Below are positions 4,138 to 58,400 of a DNA stretch of 60,980 nt, in pieces. Source of the stretch: Pelomyxa schiedti (taxonomy: Eukaryota > Protista > Evosea); NCBI GenBank assembly GCA_020536535.1, contig JAHLWZ010000313.1, positions 1 to 60,980 of the forward strand. The letters are read 5' to 3'. Position 1 is the stretch's first letter, and each line of letters starts with the position of its first letter. The translations under genes were made by a program, and so were the position numbers. The notes beneath the pieces are model-generated. The model made no database searches. It had not been told where the DNA came from and saw only the letters and a program-made list of their open reading frames with translations.

Positions 4138-6385
4138 CTAGACATCAGGAGGCCACCAGCCAGGTAGCATCAAGTCTTCTGTTTGTATCACTGGGTCATC
4201 AACCATGCTGAAGTCAGTGAACTGTTGGTCAAAGAGGGGCAGAAGCTGCAGCGGTGGCCCGGTGTGTTCATTTAGTGACCCTATTATGCTTGCAGCTGGT
4301 GTAGAGGGTGACAGAGGGGGTGGCTGGCTACTATACTGAGTGTTGTTGGTGATTGGTGTAGTGGGTTGTGGCGGCTGTTGGGACTGTGGTTGTGAGTCGC
4401 CGGGTGTAACTTGAGGTGTTGTTGGGTGCTCTGTAGCACCGTTTGTTGTAGTAGGTACATCGGTGGTTGGGATGAGAAGTGATGGAGGTGGCATTGGAAC
4501 AAGAAGGGGTGGAGGTGGAGTTAGAGTGTTCCCCGTATCAGGTACGCAGATGGGTGGCTGGACTTGTGCAGAGAATTCGAAATTGGGGATTTGGGAGGAT
4601 ATATCAGTGGCTGCTGGCCTGTCTTTGGAGGTACTTGCAATTTCTTCCACCTCTGTAACTTGACGAAGTTCCGTAGGTTTCCGAGTAATCCTTTGCTTTT
4701 GAGCCACCTTGGAGGGAGGCTGGTTTAGAATGTGTTCAACCATGCTTGGAGAGAAAGGTTGTGGAGGGATGTTGTGAAGCATTGAGCTCGATTCCGTAAA
4801 AAGAGATGCTGCCTCTTTTCCGATACGAGCTTTTTCAGTAAAACCTACATATCCTTAAGACTTAGTGACGGCAAAAGTTGCACACCCTTAAATGTCTCAG
4901 ATAAGGTATGAAGACCTCCCACTGTGGCCCATAAGAGATCTACAAGAACGGTTGGCGATAAACACTTACAAAAACACATCAAAGCAACACATTGGAAGGG
5001 TATTCACCAAAAAGGTGAGAAATGAAAGCTTCACTCAAGCCATAGGTTCGTAGGAAAAGTTGTTGAACTTCCAAAAGCTCAGTATCTAAACAGGGAAAAG
5101 GAGAAATTTGTGGTTATATTATTTGAGAAACGTGAGTGTTACACAAAATTACTTAAAAAAAAAAAGAGGAAGTGCACCAGAAGCGCGTACTTTCCCTGAC
5201 GGCCTTGCTTGGTTCATCATGGGAAGGTCCGCATTTTCACCCAAGATGAAGTGCGACACACCTTGTGAATCCACTAGCCTGAAGGTAGTAGTTAGAGCAA
5301 CTAGAAGTTGGAAAGAGAACAACTTAAGGACTACACTTCGGAGTGATTCAACACTCCACGGCATTATGGCTTGTTCCACACAAAAGTACTGAAGGGAGGG
5401 ATCAACAACGTAAAGGGGAAAAAAGATGGGCACACAATTTGGAGCGGAGCTTTCAATTCGGGTGGATTAAACAAAAGGAGTACACTTCGGCGATTTGAAT
5501 CGGTGAAGGCGCATGCAGAACCCCGTTCAAAATGGAGTGTTGTCAAACTATCCAAAACTTTCTTGCACTAAAGAGAGGAAGTTAGTCAGTCAATATTAAT
5601 AAAACGAGTGAAGAGTAAAAATGTCTCGAGGTCTTTACAGTAGAGTTCATACATCCAGTATCACTTCTTTCTGTATCTGATGATGATGCTCAAGCTCTGT
5701 CACGAACTCGAGAATATAGTCTTGTAATAGATAGTCATACTCCAGCGTGTCAAAAACACCAACTGCCTCTGCTATGAGTGCAGATGCTTCTGCTTCCTGC
5801 GAATAGGTGTTGTAAATGAAATCCATGTAAAAAGGCAAGAAAACCTACCGATGTTATCTTCAGGGATTGTATAGCATTCATAAACTCGGCATAATGCTCC
5901 ATGTTTTCTTGGGACATCTCCGTTCCTGGGAAGGTGATTTTTCTTGTTTCATATAGAGGCCCACCAAGGCTGCTGGCACTGGTTGGCACCGCAGGAGCGG
6001 CAGTAGTGGTGGCAGTCGATGTTGTGGTGGCAGTAGCAATAAATCTGCCGTATGCAAAGGGACTATTCGAGGGAGGACTTGGTGGGGAAGTCTTTTTAAC
6101 TTCGGGCGATTCCTCACAGGATGATGGGGTGGGAGCAGGAGTAGGTTTTTCCTTTTGGAAAGAATGAGTTTAGAACTTTAAAATTGTTGATTGTCCTTAC
6201 AAGGCATTTTTCTTGCTGATTGAACAAAATTCGAGGTGTCACTCTAGGGAAAACGCTTATCGCTGGAGGAGGGGGTGGTGATGTATTTGGTATAACAGAG
6301 AGTAACAGTGTGGGAATTGGGTGATTGGGTGAGTACTCGCGTTCCATTTCTGCAATAGCGTCTTCTGCGAGTTTATCAAGATAGA
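4138..6385 (-). CDS. 3' part of multi-exon Q/P-rich TPR-like protein (5' part lost in N gap); paralog of 55478-59589
   Basis: Exon ORFs 4138-4782, 5149-5555, 5647-5989, 6114-6385 conserved with copy 2, mostly synonymous or conservative changes. Confidence 0.7.
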
Positions 6386-38969: not shown

Positions 38970-41426
38970 ATGTCGATGCTCAAGGACATCACACGGCGCA
39001 CCACAACACGGATTTTGCAAAATTTGGGTGTGGTACGTTAATAGAGCTCTGTTTCTTCTTTCTTTTCGGTTTTTTTTTCTTTTTCCCCCCCCCTATCGCA
39101 TGCCAGTACGAATTTTTCATGAGAAACAAAAATTTATGAATTGAGCTACAAGTGGCCAAGTTTTCATAAAACGTGTAAAGGCAGAAAAGACAGTGGATGA
39201 AGAATTCGAAACGTTGCAGGGTGAGTATGCTTCGTTGGGTGAGTTTATACAAGAAGCCAAAGTCAATGTGAAGAATTGTGGCCACTCCCTTGATGTGCGT
39301 TCCATTGCTTTAACATAACACTTTCCTGATGTTTTAATTGCTTATAGGCATTTTGCCAATCAAGTAGAAAGTGGGCGGGTCAAATACGAAATGCAGAACC
39401 TTCCCTTGTGAGTTTATCTGGACTTGCTCATTCTGGAAAGCCCACAGGTTTTTTTCCCTCTCAAACTACCCGTTACTGAAAGAAAACCACCAAAAAAAAA
39501 GAGTCTGACCCCTCTCAGCTTCTACATCAAACTCTCACCATGGTGCATACATGCTTAGAGCAAATTGGATCAGAAATCCTTCTAAACTCCCTTCGCTCAT
39601 TAGACAACACAACTATCGCGCACATCATGGCCGATGAAGAGGCTGCCAAAGATACTCAGTTGCTGCTGAATCGGAGAAAACAAGCCAGATTGGACTACGA
39701 CACAGTCCGAAGGAGCAGGTATGCTATCTCAACATTAGATTGTATTAGTGACCTTTGTGCAGCTCCTCGGAGAGAGATCCAAGATCCGAAGAAGCCAGAT
39801 TGGTGTTTGAAGAGATATCACGTGGTGTAAGCACTTCCGTCACAGATAGGAGTGCAATGAGGTGACTAATTTAATCCGTTCCAGGCTTCTTTCTTACTAA
39901 ACAAAACTCCCAAACAGGTACCAAGCCATTATCAGCATCATTCTTGGTTTTGTTAGGAGCTTTCATCAATTCTTCTCACAGTCATTGGAGACCCTTGAGC
40001 CTCTAATGAAACTTGTTGATATTCTGGCCACATCTTTCCAGGCTTCAAAGCAGGGAAGTGCTTCCGCTGTTTCGCACCCCTCATCACCAGTTGTATCGCA
40101 GCCGTCATCGCCAGGGGTCACTCCATCGAATTCACCACCTCCCACAGTCATTCCTCAAGTATTACAGATGCCAACACCGCCACAACAGCAACCACAATTG
40201 CACCAACCAGTGCCGGTACAACCACACCAACCACAACAAATGCCAGTACAGCCACCCACGCAATTTGTCCCGTCACAACCGCACCCCACACTGGTGGATC
40301 TGACAGGTGGAAACCACGACAACGCGTTTGGCGGGGCTAGGAACAGTGGAAATAACGATACTGCATTCGGAGTCAGGAACAGTGGAAGTAACGATACTGC
40401 CTTTGGAGTCAGGAACAGTGGAGGCTCACAGGTTTCTCTTCTTAAATATCGCATGTAATCATTGTCTTCCAGGTACAAAATACTACCAGCTCCAGTGCTA
40501 GCCTGCTTGATTTTACATCCCCCGGTGTTGTTAACAATAAACCATCAACCACCTCCCTACTTTTTGATTCAGTTCTCGATCCGACGCCATTGTCCCCGGC
40601 AAGCAAGTCATTCTCAGTTCCGTCTATCGTCCCAACAAGCAATACTTCCAGTTTTGATAGTCTCTTTGGATTCAAGCCTCAGGCTAACATGGCACAACCA
40701 ACAGTGCAAACCCCGCCGAGCGCCACAACCCCACCTCTGCATCTACCAACTGTTCCCACAGGCCCGGAGATGACAAAAGAAGAAATTACACTGAAAGTCA
40801 GCCAGTGGAAAATGCAAGGAGGGCGAGAGAGCAACTTGCGTGCCCTCTTATGCGGTCTCCATCAGGTGTGTTCCCTTCCCTCTTGGCCCCTTTTTAACCC
40901 TCGCATTTAGGTTCTCTGGCCCAACAGCGGTTGGACTCCTGTAGGTTTATCTGACCTTGTTGACCACGCACATGTCAGTGAACACTATAGACACGCCATT
41001 ACGGTTGTACATCCCGATAAGGTAAGAATTCCTATCAGTGTCTACATAATTCTACCACCCACTACCTAATATCAAATTAAACAAAAAACCGGAAGTAAAA
41101 ATTAACCCCTATCTCAGGTCCGAGACTTCAGTGTCAGTCACAAGCTTCTGGCCCAAATGGTGTTTGACGCCCTACACACAGCTTACACGAAATTCAAGGA
41201 GGAATCCGCCACTGGCGCACCTTCGGTTCCCCGTTATGGGTTCAAAAACCCCAACGACCTCAACCGGGCAAAGTCTCCAGGTGCGAGTGGCGGGACCAGC
41301 AGTGCCAACAACATCAACATGAACATCAACAACAGCAACCCCAACGACCCTCTGGCTTCCCTGTCGCCACCATCGAAGACCTCTCCTCCCACAAGTCCGC
41401 CTCCTTCCACTGGCGACGTGGACTGA
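38970..41426 (+). CDS. BAR-domain + auxilin-like J-domain protein
   Basis: N-term ILQNLG..AEKTVDEEFE..RRKQARLDYD (BAR); C-term NLRALL..L..VLW....W.PVGLSDLV...Y..AI.VVHPDK..AQMVFDAL..AY.KF. Confidence 0.85.
40338..40422 (+). repeat. 36-bp coding tandem repeat (RNSG.NDTAFGV)
   Basis: aggaacagtgga..taacgatactgc.tt.ggagtc repeated 2+ times. Confidence 0.85.
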
Positions 41427-41720
41427 TATTGTTCTCAGCAACACAGCCTCTTTCCTACATTTCATTTTCGAAAATGCAATTGCCTTTTTGTGTTTTTGGG
41501 TTTTAGGCCTGGTCCTTGTGTGGGCCTTGTGGTAGTGGAGGGAAGGCTCTCAACGCACAGAGGTGGAAGGCTCAAGGCTCATTGCACAGAGATGCCAGGA
41601 CCAGAAAATACGCGCCACTATTTTTCTGTTCCCAAAGGAATTGCGCTTTCAGGTAAAGGAGATCTCTTTTTTCGAAAAACAAAATAAAAAAAAATTTCCG
41701 ACACAATAAACAGACATGCA

Positions 41721-42790
41721 TGCGGGGATGCGACAAGGCTGAAGCAGTGTGGTGTCATTCTGTGCTGTGCTCTGCCGACGGATCTCTCACGACGTATTCC
41801 CCTTTGCTTTGGTTTTTTTCCATTTGTTTCTTTGTCGCGGTTTTTTTTTTCCTTCGTGGCGTTGTTGGAGCTATGGTTGTGTGCGCTTATCTATTTCTTT
41901 TGTTTTTTGTGCAGATAGTACTCTCTGGTGTGCGCTGATTGATATTGATGCTGCTGCAGAGGATGATCATGGTGGTGGGGATGGTGTTGGTGAGTGGTTG
42001 GATGTTGGGCTGTTTTTCAGCAACAATCCATTGTTTTGTGTCGGGCTGGCTTGCACACACACAAGAAGCCAGTCGTGACGGCCCTTTTGTGTCTGGCCGG
42101 AGCTACATCTCTTCCCCGGTTTCATGACGGCCCCTTACGGGCCCCTTTCATTGTGTCTGGCCGGAGAGGAGCTACATCTCTCTCCGGTTTCATGACGGGC
42201 CCTTATGTTTGTCGGGCTGGCTTCCACACACACAAGAAGCCAGCCGTGACGGCCCTTTCTTGTCTGGCTGGAGAGGAGCTCCATCTCACTCTCCGGTTTC
42301 ATGACGGCCCCTTACGGGCCCTTTTTCATTGTGTCTGGCCGGAGAGGAGCTACACCTCACTCTCCGGTTTCATGACGGCCCCTTATGTTTGTCGGGCTGG
42401 CTTCCACACACACAAGAAGCCAGCCGTGACGGGCCCTTTTTCATTGTGTCTGGCCGGAGAGGAGCTCCATCTCACTCTCCGGTTTCATGACGGCCCCTTA
42501 TGTTTGTCGGGCTGGCTTCTACACACACATGAAGCCAGTCGTGACGGGCCCTTACTACTTTGTGTCTGGCCGGAGAGGAGTCTATCACTCTCTCCGGTTT
42601 CATGACGGGCCCCTTTTTGGGCCCCTTTTCTCACAAAATAGGTCACTCCTCACTGGTACTGTCTGTGCTGACTGCTGCTTTTGACTCTTGTTGACACACT
42701 ATTCTGACATTTGTGCAAATGGCTTGTCCCTTGTCTCTTTTCATTTCATTTCACTTCATCTCCTTCAATAAACCACATTCCTTCTCCACA
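41721..42790 (+). mobile_element. Possible LTR-like / non-autonomous element containing the hairpin array
   Basis: Starts TGCGGGGA, ends TCTCCACA (6/8 inverted match), AATAAA ~20 nt before end; no TSD, PBS or coding evidence. Confidence 0.3.
42031..42630 (+). repeat. Array of 10 palindromic hairpin modules of two types (ABBABBABAB)
   Basis: A: GTCGG GCTGGCTTC-CACACACACAA-GAAGCCAGC CGTGAC; B: GTCTG GCCGGAGAG-GAGCT..-CTCTCCGGT TTCATGAC; each followed by GGCCC(C)TT; 180-bp higher-order period. Confidence 0.95.
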
Positions 42791-43489
42791 CAGTAAGACA
42801 GGTTCTTTTGTGGGAGCCGATCCCAAGCAGCAGGCACAGCAAGCAAGCAAGCAGGCAAGGAGGAACACTCTGGGGGGTCTCAATCCCCAAGTAAGTGCCA
42901 CAATCAAATTACTTTCTACTCTTCTGACTTCCCTTCACATGTACTCTGGCGGACTTGAGGACCCTTTGGGAACAAACACCGCACTCAGGTAAATTCAACC
43001 CCCACCGATAAACAACAGCACTCACTTTTCCCCCAGAGAGGCTGAGGCTGAGGCTGATTCCGCAGATGAAGATGATTACGACATATATGATTTATATGAT
43101 TTTTCCCGGCTATTTGCGGTTCTTGAGGCTCTTCACGGTTCACCATGGCTCTTCTCTGGGGTTCTTGAGCTCTTTCCGCACCAACACCCACACTCCAGCA
43201 GTATCTTGTTACCCCGTTATCAATAAAAGATACTTTTTCTCTTGTAAGCATCTCTTAGTTTGGACTCCCTTTTTTCAAAAGCATCCTTGGAATTGGGGTC
43301 ACCTTGCACCTTTAGCTGCCACAGTCTCCAAGTTGGTGACCTTCCCAGGAAGTTTGAGAATACACTCCGAGAGAGAGGTTCTATCATTCTTTCTTGAGTG
43401 GAACCGAGTTGGCCTAGTGTTGTTTTCCTGTGCTGCCATCCTCTTCATCAGGAATTTTCATTCTTCAAGTAATCATCGTTGTTCATTGG

Positions 43490-46851
<3,362 letters not shown>

Positions 46852-52191: not shown

Positions 52192-53641
52192 ATGGAACGT
52201 AAGCTGATACTGATTGTTGTCGGTCTCTTTATCAGTGGCACAGTTCAGGTACGATTGGCGAATTGTGGGTTGCATTTTTGTGTTCGGCGGATTTCGGCTC
52301 CATTTTCCCCATTTCATGGTTGGTTTTTATAAAAGAGTGCAGGTGGTAGCACAGAAGGTGTTGTTTTCACTTCCGATTGGGGAATCGCCTGAACATCAGT
52401 TCAGAAAGCCTTGGTTTCAGACTGGTAATGCAGCCCCGTATGTGAAGATTCGATTCTTATATCTCTTCCTTGGTACAGTAAGTAACTATGAAAACAAAAT
52501 AAACACATACAGCGTCAATGTTTGCAGCAATGCTTTTTTGCTTGCTTGTACATGGGATCCACAATTGCATCCAGCCTAAATATGATCGGGAAGGTCGTAA
52601 AAGAAGGGGGAATTACTATGGAAATGACACTGGAAGTCATATCTCGTTTCGGACTGCAATTACTTGCTCTATTCCGGCACTGTGTGACATGGGAGCCACC
52701 GTACTGATGAATGCCGGTCTTCTGACACTGTCTCTCTCAATGTGGCAGATGCTCCGTGGCTCAACTGTTGTTTTCACTGCTATTTTATCTGTATTTGTCC
52801 ATGGCCGAAAACTCAGAGGTTACCATATCACTGGAATTGCAATTGTGGTCTGTTCATTTGTTGTACTGGGTTTTGCTTGCTCACATATGAACGGCGGCAC
52901 TGTTGAGAACGTTGTACTGCCGCAGTTGCATATCATTGCCTCCACTGATAGGAATACGTGGGCTTACATCATCGCGATAGTTCTTGTTATGAGTGCACAA
53001 TTCCTTGCATCCACCCAGTTCATTTTCGAAGAAACACTTCTGAAGAGATCGTTAGATCCTGTTCCACCAATGTTACTTGTTGGATTGGAGGGTCTGTGGG
53101 GATTACTTGCCTGCTTTGTACTGCTTCCATCACTTCAGATGCTGCCTTTCTGCAGGGAGTCATCAGTTAAGAGTTTCTGGGATTCTGTATGTGAAGTCAC
53201 ATGGGGTGGGGAATGGTCAACAATCTCCATGCTGCGGAATAGGCTGGTTTTGATTGTTGCGTTGATTTATTTCATGGGTGCCTTTGCCTTCAACATGTGC
53301 TCGATTTTGACAACAAATGCCTTCACTGCGGTGCATCACACCATTTTTGACGGTTCCAGGACTGCCTGTGTGAGTATATCCTACTTCCCAAAGTTCCACT
53401 TAGGAATTCTCAGTTTATACAATAGATTTGGATTGTGATGTTGTTACTGCATGCCTTCGTAACAGACTTGGGTGAGGCATGGATAAACTGGAGTTGGCTT
53501 GAGCTAGGCGCATTCGGCCTGCTCACTGCAGGAACCCTCCTTTTCAATCGTGTAGTGAGACTGCCGTGGTGCTTTTCGTACACTGTCGGAGATCAGCATC
53601 AGGAGTGGGCTACTTTGCCTCATTACGAAACGTGCATTTAG
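52192..53641 (+). CDS. SLC35F6-like transporter, copy 2
   Basis: High identity to 244-1694; in-frame indels only. Confidence 0.85.
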
Positions 53642-55477: not shown

Positions 55478-58400
55478 CTAGACATCAGGAGGCCACCAAC
55501 CAGGGAGCATCAAGTCTTCTGTTTGTATCACGGGGTCGTCAACCATGCTGAAGTCAGTGAACTGCTGGTCAAAGAGGGGCAGAAGCTGCAGTGGTGGCCC
55601 GGTGTGTTCATTTAGTGACCCTATGATGCTTGCGGCTGGTGTGGAGGGTGACAGAGGGGGTGGCTGGCTACTATACTGAGTGTTGTTGGTGAGTGGTGTA
55701 GTGGGTTGTGTCGGCTGTTGGGACTGTGGTTGTGTATCGCCGGGTGTAACTTGTGGTGTTGTTGGGTGCTCTGGAGCACCGTTTGTTGTAGTTGGTACAT
55801 CGGTGGCAGGGATTAGAAGTGATGGGGGTGGCATTGGAACAAGGAGGGGTGGAGGCGGAGTTAGAGTGTTCCCTGTATCCGGTACACAGATAGGTGGTGG
55901 CACTTGCGTGGAGAATTCGAAATTGGGAATCTGTGAGGACATTTCGGTGGTTGCTGGCCTGTCTTTGGTGGTACTTCCAATTTCTTCCACTTCTGTAACT
56001 TGACGAAGTTCCGTGTGTTTCCGAGCAATCCTTTGCTTTTGAGCCACCTTGGAGGGAGGCTGGTTTAGAATGTGTTCAACCATGCTCGGAGAGAAAGGTT
56101 GCGGAGGGATGTTGTGGAGCATTGAGCTCGATTCCGTAAAAAGAGATCCTGCCTCTTTGCCGATGCGAGCTTTTTCAGTAAAACCTAATATCCTTAAGAC
56201 TTAGTGAAAGTAAAAGCTACACACTTTTAAATGTCTCAGATAACGTATGAAGACCTCCCACTGTGGCCCATAAGAGATCTAAAAAGAACGGTTGGTGACA
56301 AACACTTACAAAAACACATCAAAACAACACATTGGAAGGGTATTCACCAAAAAGGTGAGAAATGAAAGCTTCACTCAAGCCATAAGTCCGGAGGAAAAGT
56401 TGTTGAACTTCCAAAAGCTCGGCATCTAAACATGGAAAAAGGAGAAATTTGTGGTTATATTATTTGAGAAACGTGAGTGTTACACAAAATTACTTAAAAA
56501 AAAAGAGGAAGTGCACCAGAAGCGCGTACTTTCCCTGACGGCCTTGCTTGGTTCATCATGGGAAGGTCCGCATTTTCACCCAAGATGAAGTGGGACACAC
56601 CTTGTGAATCCACCAGCCTGAAGGTAGTCGTTAGAGCACTAGAAGTTTGAAAGAGAACAACTTAAGGACTACACTTCGCAGTGATTCAACGCTCCACGGC
56701 ATTATGGCTTGCTCCACACAGAAGTACTGAAGGGAGGAGGGATCAACAACGCGCAATGTGAAGGGGAAAAAAAATGTGGCACACAATTTGGAGTGGAGCT
56801 TTCAATTCAGGTGGATTAAACAAAAGGAGTACACTTCGGCGATTTGAATCAGTGAAGGCGCATGCAGAACCCCGTTCAAAATGGAGTGTTGTCAAACTAT
56901 CCAATACTTTCTTACACTAAAGAGGAAGTTAGTAAATCAATATCAAAAAAACGTGTGAATAGTAAAAATGTCTCGAGGTCTTTACAGTAGAGTTCATACA
57001 TCCAGTATCACTTCTTTCTGTATCTGATGATGATGCTCAAGCTCTGTCACAAACTCGAGAATATAGTCTTGTAATAGATAGTCATACTCCAGTGTGTCAA
57101 AAACACCAACTGCCTCTGCTATGAGTGCAGATGCTTCTGCTTCCTGCGAATGATGTTGTAAATGAAATCCATGTAAAAAGGTAAGAAAACATACCGACGT
57201 TATCTTCAGGGATTGAATAGCATTCATAAACTCGGCGTAATGCTCCATGTTTTCTTGGGACATCTCTGTTCCTGGGAAGGTGATTTTTCTTGTTTCATAT
57301 AGAGGCCCGCCAAGGCTGCTGGCACTAGTTGGTACGGCAGGAGCGGCAGTAGTGGTGGCAGTCGATGTTGTGGTGGCAGTAGCAATAAATCTACCGTATG
57401 CAAAGGGACTATTCGAGGGAGGGCTTGGTGGAGAAGTCTTTTTAACTTCGGGCGATTCCTCGCAGGATGACGGGGTGGGAGCAGGAGTAGGTTTTTCCTT
57501 TGGGAAAGAATGAGTTCAGAACTTCAGATTTGTGGATTGTCCTTACAAGGCATTTCTCTTGCTGATTGAACAAAATTCTAGGCGTCACTCTAGGGAAAAC
57601 GCTTATCGCAGGAGGAGGGGGTGGTGATGTATTTGGTATAACAGAGAGTAACAGTGTGGGAATTGGGTGATTGGGTGAGTACTCGCGTTCCATTTCTGCA
57701 ATAGCGTCTTCTGCGAGTTTATCAAGATAGAGAGAACTAATGTCAGTAGAAACATTAGGATCCTCCAACGCCGTGAGGATATTCATTGCAGCTGGAGACT
57801 TACTACACTCAAACGCTTCCCTAGAGACGAAAATTACCAAAAAATAAAGGTGTTATGGAAGAGCTGTTACTTTGTCTTTGCGATATCTCCTTCTCGTGCA
57901 TAGAGAGTACCAAGAAGTACCCAGCTTTGAGATGTATTAATGGCTTGGAGAAGCTACAGAACATCTTAAACTTGGTGCAAACAAATTGAGGATACCTGCT
58001 TTGCTTCAGCTGGTTGGTTCTCCTGTATCAGAAGGTGGGCAAGCCTCATTCTGCCCAAGGGTGAATTGGCTGCTAAGTATGACAAGGCTGCTTGATCTGG
58101 GCGTCCTGTCCTCTGACACAAAGCCTGCAGGTGTACATAAGTGGGAGTGATTTCACTTCTATACTGAGGCTGTTACCCCAAGGGCAGTCATTGCTGTTGC
58201 AGATCCAGATTGCGTATAACAGAGTTCAGCTTTGTCAAAGGAACCTCTCATCTCGTACAGTTGTCCCAATTGATACAATGCAACAGGTTTGCCGATCACC
58301 TTCACGTAGTCTTCAAGTTGACGTTTTACATTTTCCTGCCCACACCAGGAAGGCAGGGAAGATTGTGCATCAAAGGTGTGTCTTAATGACCGCCTTGTGC

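Follow-up and report, generated by a model that had tools for sequence, protein, structure and literature searches.

A ten-hairpin array within a spliced, apparently non-coding transcript of Pelomyxa schiedti, a putative multivalent protein-binding platform

The DNA analysed here (the window) is a stretch of 60,980 nucleotides from Pelomyxa schiedti, in which an array of hairpins lies between two protein-coding genes. The upstream gene is on the plus strand, contains a J-domain exon of 37 residues with a readable HPD motif and a weak match to DnaJ, and ends at 41426. The downstream gene, also on the plus strand, encodes a DEAH helicase, with DHX35 as the best among its solved relatives; the start codon (ATG) lies at 43490, which places the array 860 bp upstream of it. 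The array belongs to a unit of about 1.6 kb (about 41661-43257) that has paralogues in the same genome. Transcription was assessed from RNA run X1, a single-cell RNA-seq run of low depth consisting of contigs from poly(A)-primed long cDNA, in which ends, levels and small products are not visible. Published transcriptomes of P. schiedti were made by Smart-seq2 (PMC8887013). The features of the unit are listed below.

41661-41694, plus strand: start of the unit and presumed promoter, with GATCT and a T-run (41661-41672) and an A-rich, TATA-like box (41681-41694)
41762-41793, plus strand: exon 1, the 32 nt before the splice in X1 record 2, with an undefined 5' end
41794-41914, plus strand: intron 1, 121 nt, GT..AG, with a T-rich tract; its joint is present in X1
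41915-42890, plus strand: exon 2, covered by X1 records 2-5; the 3' end at 42890 is predicted from a conserved donor
42039-42630, plus strand: hairpin array of ten modules in the order A1 B1 B2 A2 B3 B4 A3 B5 A4 B6
42040-42079 (A1), 42211-42250 (A2), 42391-42430 (A3) and 42506-42545 (A4), plus strand: A-type hairpins of 13-14 bp with a CA-repeat loop of 11-13 nt
42091-42128 (B1), 42155-42196 (B2), 42262-42305 (B3), 42333-42376 (B4), 42448-42491 (B5) and 42564-42606 (B6), plus strand: B-type hairpins of 16-17 bp with bulges on the 3' side and a loop of 5-6 nt, B1 being degenerate
42631-42825, plus strand: spacer between the array and the 3' block, with several YUGAC words, covered by RNA (X1 record 5, 42471-42839)
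42826-43277, plus strand: 3' block (about 0.45 kb) that recurs dispersed in the genome; it contains a small G/C stem-loop, and a donor is predicted at the 42890/42891 boundary and an acceptor at the 43036/43037 boundary
43222-43227 and 43249-43257, plus strand: end features of the 3' block, namely AATAAA and the unit end motif, respectively

The modules of the array have one layout in common, which consists of a T-rich lead, GUC, a stem with its loop, RUGAC and GGSCCC, followed by a U-rich linker, with 10-27 nt separating one hairpin from the next. The initial annotation had described ten modules in the order ABBABBABAB, and every one of its coordinates was matched, far above chance, by the GTC starts at 42040, 42091, 42155, 42211, 42262, 42333, 42391, 42448, 42506 and 42564. 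The word RTGACGGSCC was found 10 times in the 60,980 bases of the window, with all ten occurrences inside the array and on the plus strand, where shuffles gave an expected count of 0.31. Furthermore, Tandem Repeats Finder detected two higher-order periods with 90-92% matches, one of 180 for A-B-B and one of 115 for A-B, each unit being present twice, and the two 115-nt A-B units are 95% alike. Being composed of head-to-tail repeats with higher-order periodicity, the array has the form of a minisatellite, a label that refers to form and with which function is compatible. The array arose recently, by tandem amplification of two hairpin types through unequal crossing-over, and its ten modules, as copies of two hairpins, do not represent ten independent observations.

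In nine of the ten modules the hairpin has 13-17 bp and a folding energy of -17 to -22 kcal/mol, the degenerate exception being B1 (10 bp, -7.8 kcal/mol), and folding of the whole array gave a z of -9.0 relative to dinucleotide shuffles. With R1, a covariance model of the B type, the B modules scored 64-91 bits, on the plus strand only. It was initially claimed that the stems of A and B are unrelated, which proved to be overstated, as the two types have a basal stem in common. One register of 14 pairs fits both A and B, and eight of the 14 paired positions are identical, comprising the GUC/GAC base and most of GGCYGG/CCRGYY. At pairs 8 and 11-14, A and B differ on both sides with standard pairing retained, and in B3 pair 8 is U.G, which is intermediate between C-G and U-A. 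Within one type the variation is found mostly in the loops and the distal stem, and the changes in the basal stem are C>U and preserve pairing by wobble; one more C>U variant was seen in read data at 42365. MAFFT does not place A and B in structural register, and the model-made A+B alignment includes chance rows. The pairing evidence for selection is made up of few events in non-independent copies from one species. The C>U wobbles on the plus strand could alternatively originate from deamination of the non-template strand, and the both-sided differences between A and B could reflect a single block replacement or a template switch instead of selection. It was reported that arms matched on both sides can arise in one event by template switching (PMC8794818).

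In the 14-pair register, 125 of 126 cells are paired on the plus strand compared with 113 of 126 on the minus strand, where fewer cells pair because G.U pairs turn into C.A. The plus strand is therefore the better-pairing strand, the strand for which the initial annotation had noted G.U pairs from stem substitutions. The summed energy of the ten hairpins was -189.5 kcal/mol in the sense and -171.5 kcal/mol in the antisense orientation. The better pairing of the plus strand, together with an RNA splice on the same strand (see below), means that the strand that folds is the strand that is transcribed.

X1 contains 86% of the sampled words of the array. When X1 was analysed on 40000-45500, one contig was found to join 41793 to 41915 and to run on into the array up to 42175, and the 121 nt that it skips (41794-41914) have GT..AG ends on the plus strand. 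Further X1 contigs extend over 42147-42299 and 42471-42839, and exon 2 is covered at least over 41915-42299 and 42471-42839. The joint from 41793 to 41915 is absent in three other runs, which span the whole stretch and look like DNA, their kind not being on record. The upstream J-domain gene is represented in X1 by one contig from which three GT..AG introns have been removed. X1 coverage was missing on 41472-41655, within an uncovered gap given as 41390-41761, and there was none at all on 42944-45500, the helicase region. Since the J-domain gene occurs only as a spliced contig and the helicase region is uncovered, carry-over of DNA into X1 is unlikely. From the joint and the coverage it follows that the array is transcribed on the plus strand within a spliced RNA, which is probably not the helicase mRNA. 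The initial annotation had read the array as a structured RNA and had named lack of transcription as an argument against this; contigs from an RNA library do lie on the array and are joined to a plus-strand GT..AG splice, which fits that reading. As no X1 contig was found on 42840-43277, intron 2, exon 3 and the poly(A) site of the unit are predicted ones. A 31-nt mini-intron at about 41990-42020 was also considered and rejected, this stretch being unspliced in the RNA contig and the acceptor being absent in C612, a paralogue described below.

Searches for known families were made with the window and with paralogues of the unit. Rfam gave no match for the window at gathering score, for 41500-43200 at E up to 10 or for seven paralogous loci, so that the comparison by Infernal with Rfam, proposed at the outset, ended with no family matched. 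The single match to a ribozyme model was to the hairpin-ribozyme at a chance level of 9.5 bits, far under gathering score, and a self-cleaving ribozyme satellite (hammerhead, twister and others) was rejected, as no covariance model matched above the gathering score. A tRNA scan found nothing. Two further candidates were dismissed: a cluster of box C/D or H/ACA snoRNAs, for which there was no Rfam match and of which no boxes were seen on reading the modules, and a cluster of miRNA-type hairpins, whose duplex of about 21 nt compares with stems of 13-17 bp in the array.

The genome searched was the P. schiedti assembly of 52,367,397 bases in 5337 contigs; the published single-cell genome of this species has 52.4 Mb in 5337 scaffolds (PMC8887013). 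BLAST of A2+B3 in the genome recovered the array itself only, and a genome search with model R1 found the six B modules only. The frame motifs, either singly or paired across a gap, gave background matches in the genome, none of them with an adjoining hairpin. Near-complements of the arms with up to 3 mismatches were found nowhere else in the genome except in the C612 paralogue. In pattern scans of metagenome and prokaryotic genome collections, the 120 matches listed for each were chance singletons from GC-rich bacteria, with no arrays among them. Since the host is a eukaryote, readings of the array as REP/BIME, attC or CRISPR elements are out of place. The array had already been said not to be CRISPR, and a CRISPR array can indeed be rejected, given that unique spacers are absent and the linkers are repeated. 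The analogies with ssDNA hairpin sites, REP/BIME and attC that accompanied that statement have to be abandoned, considering the eukaryotic host, the background level of the frame motif elsewhere in the absence of hairpins, and the lack of an integron or transposase context.

The closest paralogue was found by a search with a 20-nt A arm (one mismatch) and lies on the minus strand of C612. It covers window 41687-42070 and 42847-43164 with 71-92% identity and has one truncated, A-like remnant hairpin, the array itself being absent. This paralogue aligns across the intron 1 region (window 41687-41839 and 41919-42070), and the 5' part of the unit, comprising the unit start and the intron region, matches it at 71-80%. 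The 3' block (42826-43277) has at least nine further copies with 75-85% identity. The splice donor is kept in all nine copies of the block that cover it, the segment in C4115 ending a few bases into the donor, and most copies keep the acceptor with its pyrimidine tract and an AATAAA near the end. No frame of the 3' block is open or conserved across the copies, and an apparent acidic peptide in this block was rejected, as no frame is common to them. In C940 the block is preceded by a 62-nt repeat in three copies, and every copy has a hairpin of 9-10 bp. In C794, C805, C1938, C4115 and at the start of C498 it is preceded by seven hairpins each, whose stems differ and whose apical cap is constant (UGAC-GACAUU..-GUCA) with a GACAUU loop (the GACAUU subfamily), and two copies of the block, C498 at 53.5 kb and C1515, are without an array. 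The central array thus differs between units, with seven capped hairpins, three 62-nt hairpins or, in the window, ten hairpins of two types. The early description of the array as cassette-like gains support at the level of the family, in which paralogous units bear different hairpin arrays at the same place.

Like the window unit, the GACAUU-cap units of this genome have the 3' block, the unit end motif and a central sense-strand hairpin array at the same position, and they appear to resemble it in the unit start and in an intron-bearing 5' part. The units of C794 and C805 are homologous to each other over about 1.35 kb, with start and end motifs as in the window unit. The same start motif stands at the head of both, and at the collinear position of the unit start the window and the C794 copy match locally at 86% over 35 nt; a promoter role for the region 41661-41694 is presumed. 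Compared with the GACAUU subfamily, the 5' part of the window unit has only short collinear matches (E 3e-4 to 0.04) in addition to the start motif, the 3' block has 75-77% identity, and a stretch faintly similar to the 42631-42825 spacer precedes the 3' block. The window array and the GACAUU arrays have only words of 7-9 nt in common, no more than a reversed control, and are not alignable. The homology of the window unit to the GACAUU units is one of flanks and not of arrays. In the GACAUU-cap units the cap is constant and the stems differ, whereas in the window the helix base and the linker are constant and the tops differ; the window modules thus lack a constant cap, and the across-linker register of the capped design works in the window only at the two B-to-B junctions. 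The window array is accordingly a relative of the GACAUU subfamily and not a member of it. In the four GACAUU-subfamily copies tested, as in the window array, folding is more favourable for the sense than for the antisense strand, and no both-sided changes were found among copies of the GACAUU subfamily.

The genes beside the units differ and some are convergent (at C498, for example, a TMEM185-like gene runs on the opposite strand), so that the unit is not a general 5' leader; we infer that it is an independent gene. A reading of the whole unit as a transposable element was rejected, although it may still hold for the 3' block alone. The boundaries of the C794 and C805 units have neither terminal inverted repeats nor target-site duplications, the introns have been retained, and the homology fades with no sharp stop.

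Structured lncRNAs with tandem protein-binding hairpins are represented by a few animal cases, for example the Xist A-repeat. To our knowledge nothing comparable to such hairpin-platform lncRNAs has been described in Archamoebae. The window array is of the repeat-structured non-coding RNA kind, with cassette-like differences between paralogues. The Xist A-repeat is composed of tandem GC-rich hairpin cores with U/A-rich single-stranded linkers in a spliced and polyadenylated ncRNA, and forms a multivalent protein platform (PMC6917512). The window array has the same layout of hairpin cores and single-stranded linkers, with no relation to the A-repeat in sequence or evolution. The A-repeat has one 26-nt repeat type in 7.5-8.5 copies, whereas the window has two types in ten modules, and its function and its partner SPEN/SHARP are established, whereas protein binding by the window array is putative. 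By analogy of layout, the A-repeat may be taken as the closest functional counterpart of the array.

Another amoebozoan system that was considered is that of the Dictyostelid Class I RNAs, which are 42-65 nt long, are clustered in intergenic DNA and have a stem kept by structure over sequence; every such RNA is encoded by a gene of its own, with a DUSE promoter about 60 nt before it, and has a terminal stem of 6 bp and a motif of 11 nt (PMC7919456). Like these RNAs, the window modules are amoebozoan, short and clustered, with structure kept over sequence. Unlike them, the window has one presumed promoter region upstream, linkers of 10-27 nt and a spliced host transcript. A reading of the modules as Class I RNAs was rejected, as the linkers leave no space for a promoter in each module and there was no Rfam match. 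REP/BIME and attC elements likewise resemble the window array in being imperfect palindromes whose base is conserved and whose top varies. They are prokaryotic elements of ssDNA recombination or of mRNA ends, either in many dispersed copies or tied to an integrase, whereas the window array is eukaryotic, is confined to a single locus and lies within a spliced transcript.

The array is very probably a real sense-strand RNA exon within a paralogous non-coding unit. The reading that we favour, with a probability of roughly 0.45, is that the array is the amplified hairpin core of a lineage-specific ncRNA gene and serves as a multivalent protein-binding platform. According to this proposal, the array would form the core of exon 2 in a spliced, sense-strand and apparently non-coding RNA, whose host transcript would belong to a P. 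schiedti-specific family with units of about 1.3-1.6 kb. Such a unit would have a promoter-like start, at least one intron, a hairpin array at its centre and, on the 3' side, a conserved block that contains AATAAA. The two hairpin types, with the same basal helix (GUC/GAC and GGCYGG/CCRGYY) and different tops, would have been amplified by unequal crossing-over into A-B-B, A-B-B, A-B, A-B. The RNA would display ten stable helices with single-stranded GGSCCC and U-rich linkers between them, and one or two RNA-binding proteins might use it as a multivalent platform or scaffold or be taken up by it as by a sponge. These proteins may read the constant helix base or the linker, which would leave the tops and loops free to vary. 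That selection maintains the hairpins and that they bind protein is put forward tentatively.

The main and serious rival to the platform reading is a neutral hairpin minisatellite within a transcribed exon, generated by template switching or block replacement followed by unequal crossing-over, in which the fold is functionless. Hairpin minisatellites and template-switch inverted repeats are like the window array in their higher-order tandem structure, in unequal crossing-over and in perfect arms, and template switching can make a perfect stem in one event (PMC8794818). The periods of 180 and 115 are typical of minisatellite dynamics, and both the lack of an array in the closest paralogue and in two copies of the 3' block and the absence of both-sided changes among the close GACAUU paralogues would be in line with neutrality. 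However, such repeats predict neither different arrays at the same place of paralogous units nor a strand-specific fold. It is hard to explain by chance that related units have, at one and the same position, hairpin arrays of three unlike sequences. The loops vary whereas the frame and the basal stems are invariant, and the sense strand is favoured in the window array and in the four GACAUU copies tested. We regard the neutral account as possible, if rather unlikely.

The other explanations have a lower standing than this. The regular spacing of the hairpins, their constant base and constant 3' tail, and the spliced and seemingly non-coding nature of the host transcript would suit a polycistronic small-RNA gene, whose precursor would be cut into products of about 40-60 nt or into guide RNAs shorter than these. 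This is nevertheless improbable, as the stems of 13-17 bp are under the length of a 21-nt duplex, no Rfam match was obtained at E up to 10, C/D or H/ACA boxes were not seen, near-complements of the arms are limited to the C612 paralogue within the genome, and the array is intact in long cDNA contigs. It was also considered that the array might regulate the translation or stability of a neighbouring mRNA, as part of a long, structured 5' leader of the DHX35-like helicase transcript or of the 3' UTR of the J-domain transcript. In favour of this, the three transcription units have the plus strand in common, no ends are defined by the RNA contigs, and the 41390-41761 gap is merely uncovered. Yet X1 covers the array and nothing on 42944-45500, and the unit has start and end motifs of its own, common to paralogues that stand beside unrelated and partly convergent genes, which makes a role as a UTR quite improbable. 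Still fainter is the case for an element acting at the level of DNA, in which palindromic protein-binding sites with TGACG-type half-sites would serve the helicase promoter as an upstream enhancer or insulator: TGACG occurs ten times at even spacing in the array, which lies 860 bp upstream of the helicase ATG, but binding to duplex DNA needs neither long complementary arms nor strand-specific G.U pairs, and the region is transcribed and spliced. We give next to no credence to a repeat-containing protein, despite a 203-codon open frame (41994-42605) that crosses the array and stays open through nine of the ten modules, all of which bear a TGA. In that frame the modules fall in phases 0, 1 and 2 (A modules 1, 1, 1, 2; B modules 1, 2, 1, 0, 1, 0), which means that no peptide repeat is kept. 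By a rough estimate, nine TGAs would miss one given frame by chance in about 3% and any of three frames in about 8% of cases. The frame has no in-frame ATG at its start, no Pfam match and no protein relative, and the array transcript is apparently non-coding.

Beyond the window, it is conceivable, though on the speculative side, that these ncRNA genes are built on one chassis, with the start, at least one intron and the 3' block in common, in which the array is an exchangeable, fast-evolving cassette, that their RNAs are multivalent and scaffold or titrate RNA-binding proteins, and that amplification tunes their valency. As natural multivalent hairpin arrays, the proposed P. schiedti RNAs would be comparable to engineered MS2 arrays. 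If the family is functional, its paralogues, with different arrays on one chassis, would offer a natural series for the origin and the change in valency of RNA platforms. If the array is neutral, it would be a clear example of hairpin minisatellites feeding new structured modules into transcripts. For this family of hairpin-array units, the window locus provides RNA evidence of both splicing and strand.

On another P. schiedti contig, C940 (extracted locus C940:10227-13562), a 62-nt tandem repeat was found in three copies on the minus strand, immediately upstream of the copy of the dispersed 3' block carried by that contig, in the position that the ten hairpin modules occupy in the window. Every copy of this repeat contains one hairpin, with a stem of 9-10 bp and a loop of 6 nt. 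Downstream of the hairpin array itself, the stretch at 42631-42720 holds four or five YUGAC words within about 60 nt, the UGAC of which is also the word that closes each hairpin of the array. A YUGAC cluster of this size likewise follows the array, in the equivalent stretch, in units of the GACAUU subfamily, the paralogues whose seven hairpins bear a constant GACAUU cap. Two microsatellites lie inside the unit:

42824-42859, 4-nt CAAG-type repeat, at the start of the 3' block
43038-43057, GAGGCT hexamer repeat

Both differ in length among paralogues and among sequencing runs, one run having an 8-nt insertion at 42837, and contig breaks coincide with both of them.

The 3' block (about 0.45 kb, window 42826-43277) also occurs in copies free of any hairpin array, at C498:52042-55370 and C1515:1-2671, and it may spread independently. 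The C498 copy, at 53.5 kb, adjoins a TMEM185-like gene of the opposite strand and possibly lies inside it. In C1515 the homology begins just a few bases upstream of the conserved splice donor. C498 also seems to carry two units, approximately 1.3 kb apart. The window's unit opens and closes with similar words, ATCTCTT, roughly 8 nt long (in 41661-41672 and 43249-43257), and so do the units on C794 and C805 at the corresponding places. This hints that the units arose as head-to-tail copies or by recombination at this word.

The unit is flanked by an auxilin-like J-domain gene (40312-41426), whose HPD motif lies in the exon at 40911-41021. Its three short introns (41, 45 and 96 nt) were confirmed by an RNA contig, and at 40339-40422 the gene has a tandem repeat with a 36-nt period that stays in frame. 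On the other side, from 43490 to about 46850, lies a DEAH-box helicase gene with a long N-terminal glycine-rich stretch (about 43680-43810) and DHX35 as its best solved relative; this gene was silent in the sole RNA run covering the array. Near both ends of the contig, two EamA-like transporter open frames (557-1456 and 52518-53438) and the two copies of an identical 17-nt repeat (6316-6332 and 57662-57678) are separated by about 51-52 kb, an arrangement suggesting that a large segment was duplicated within this contig.
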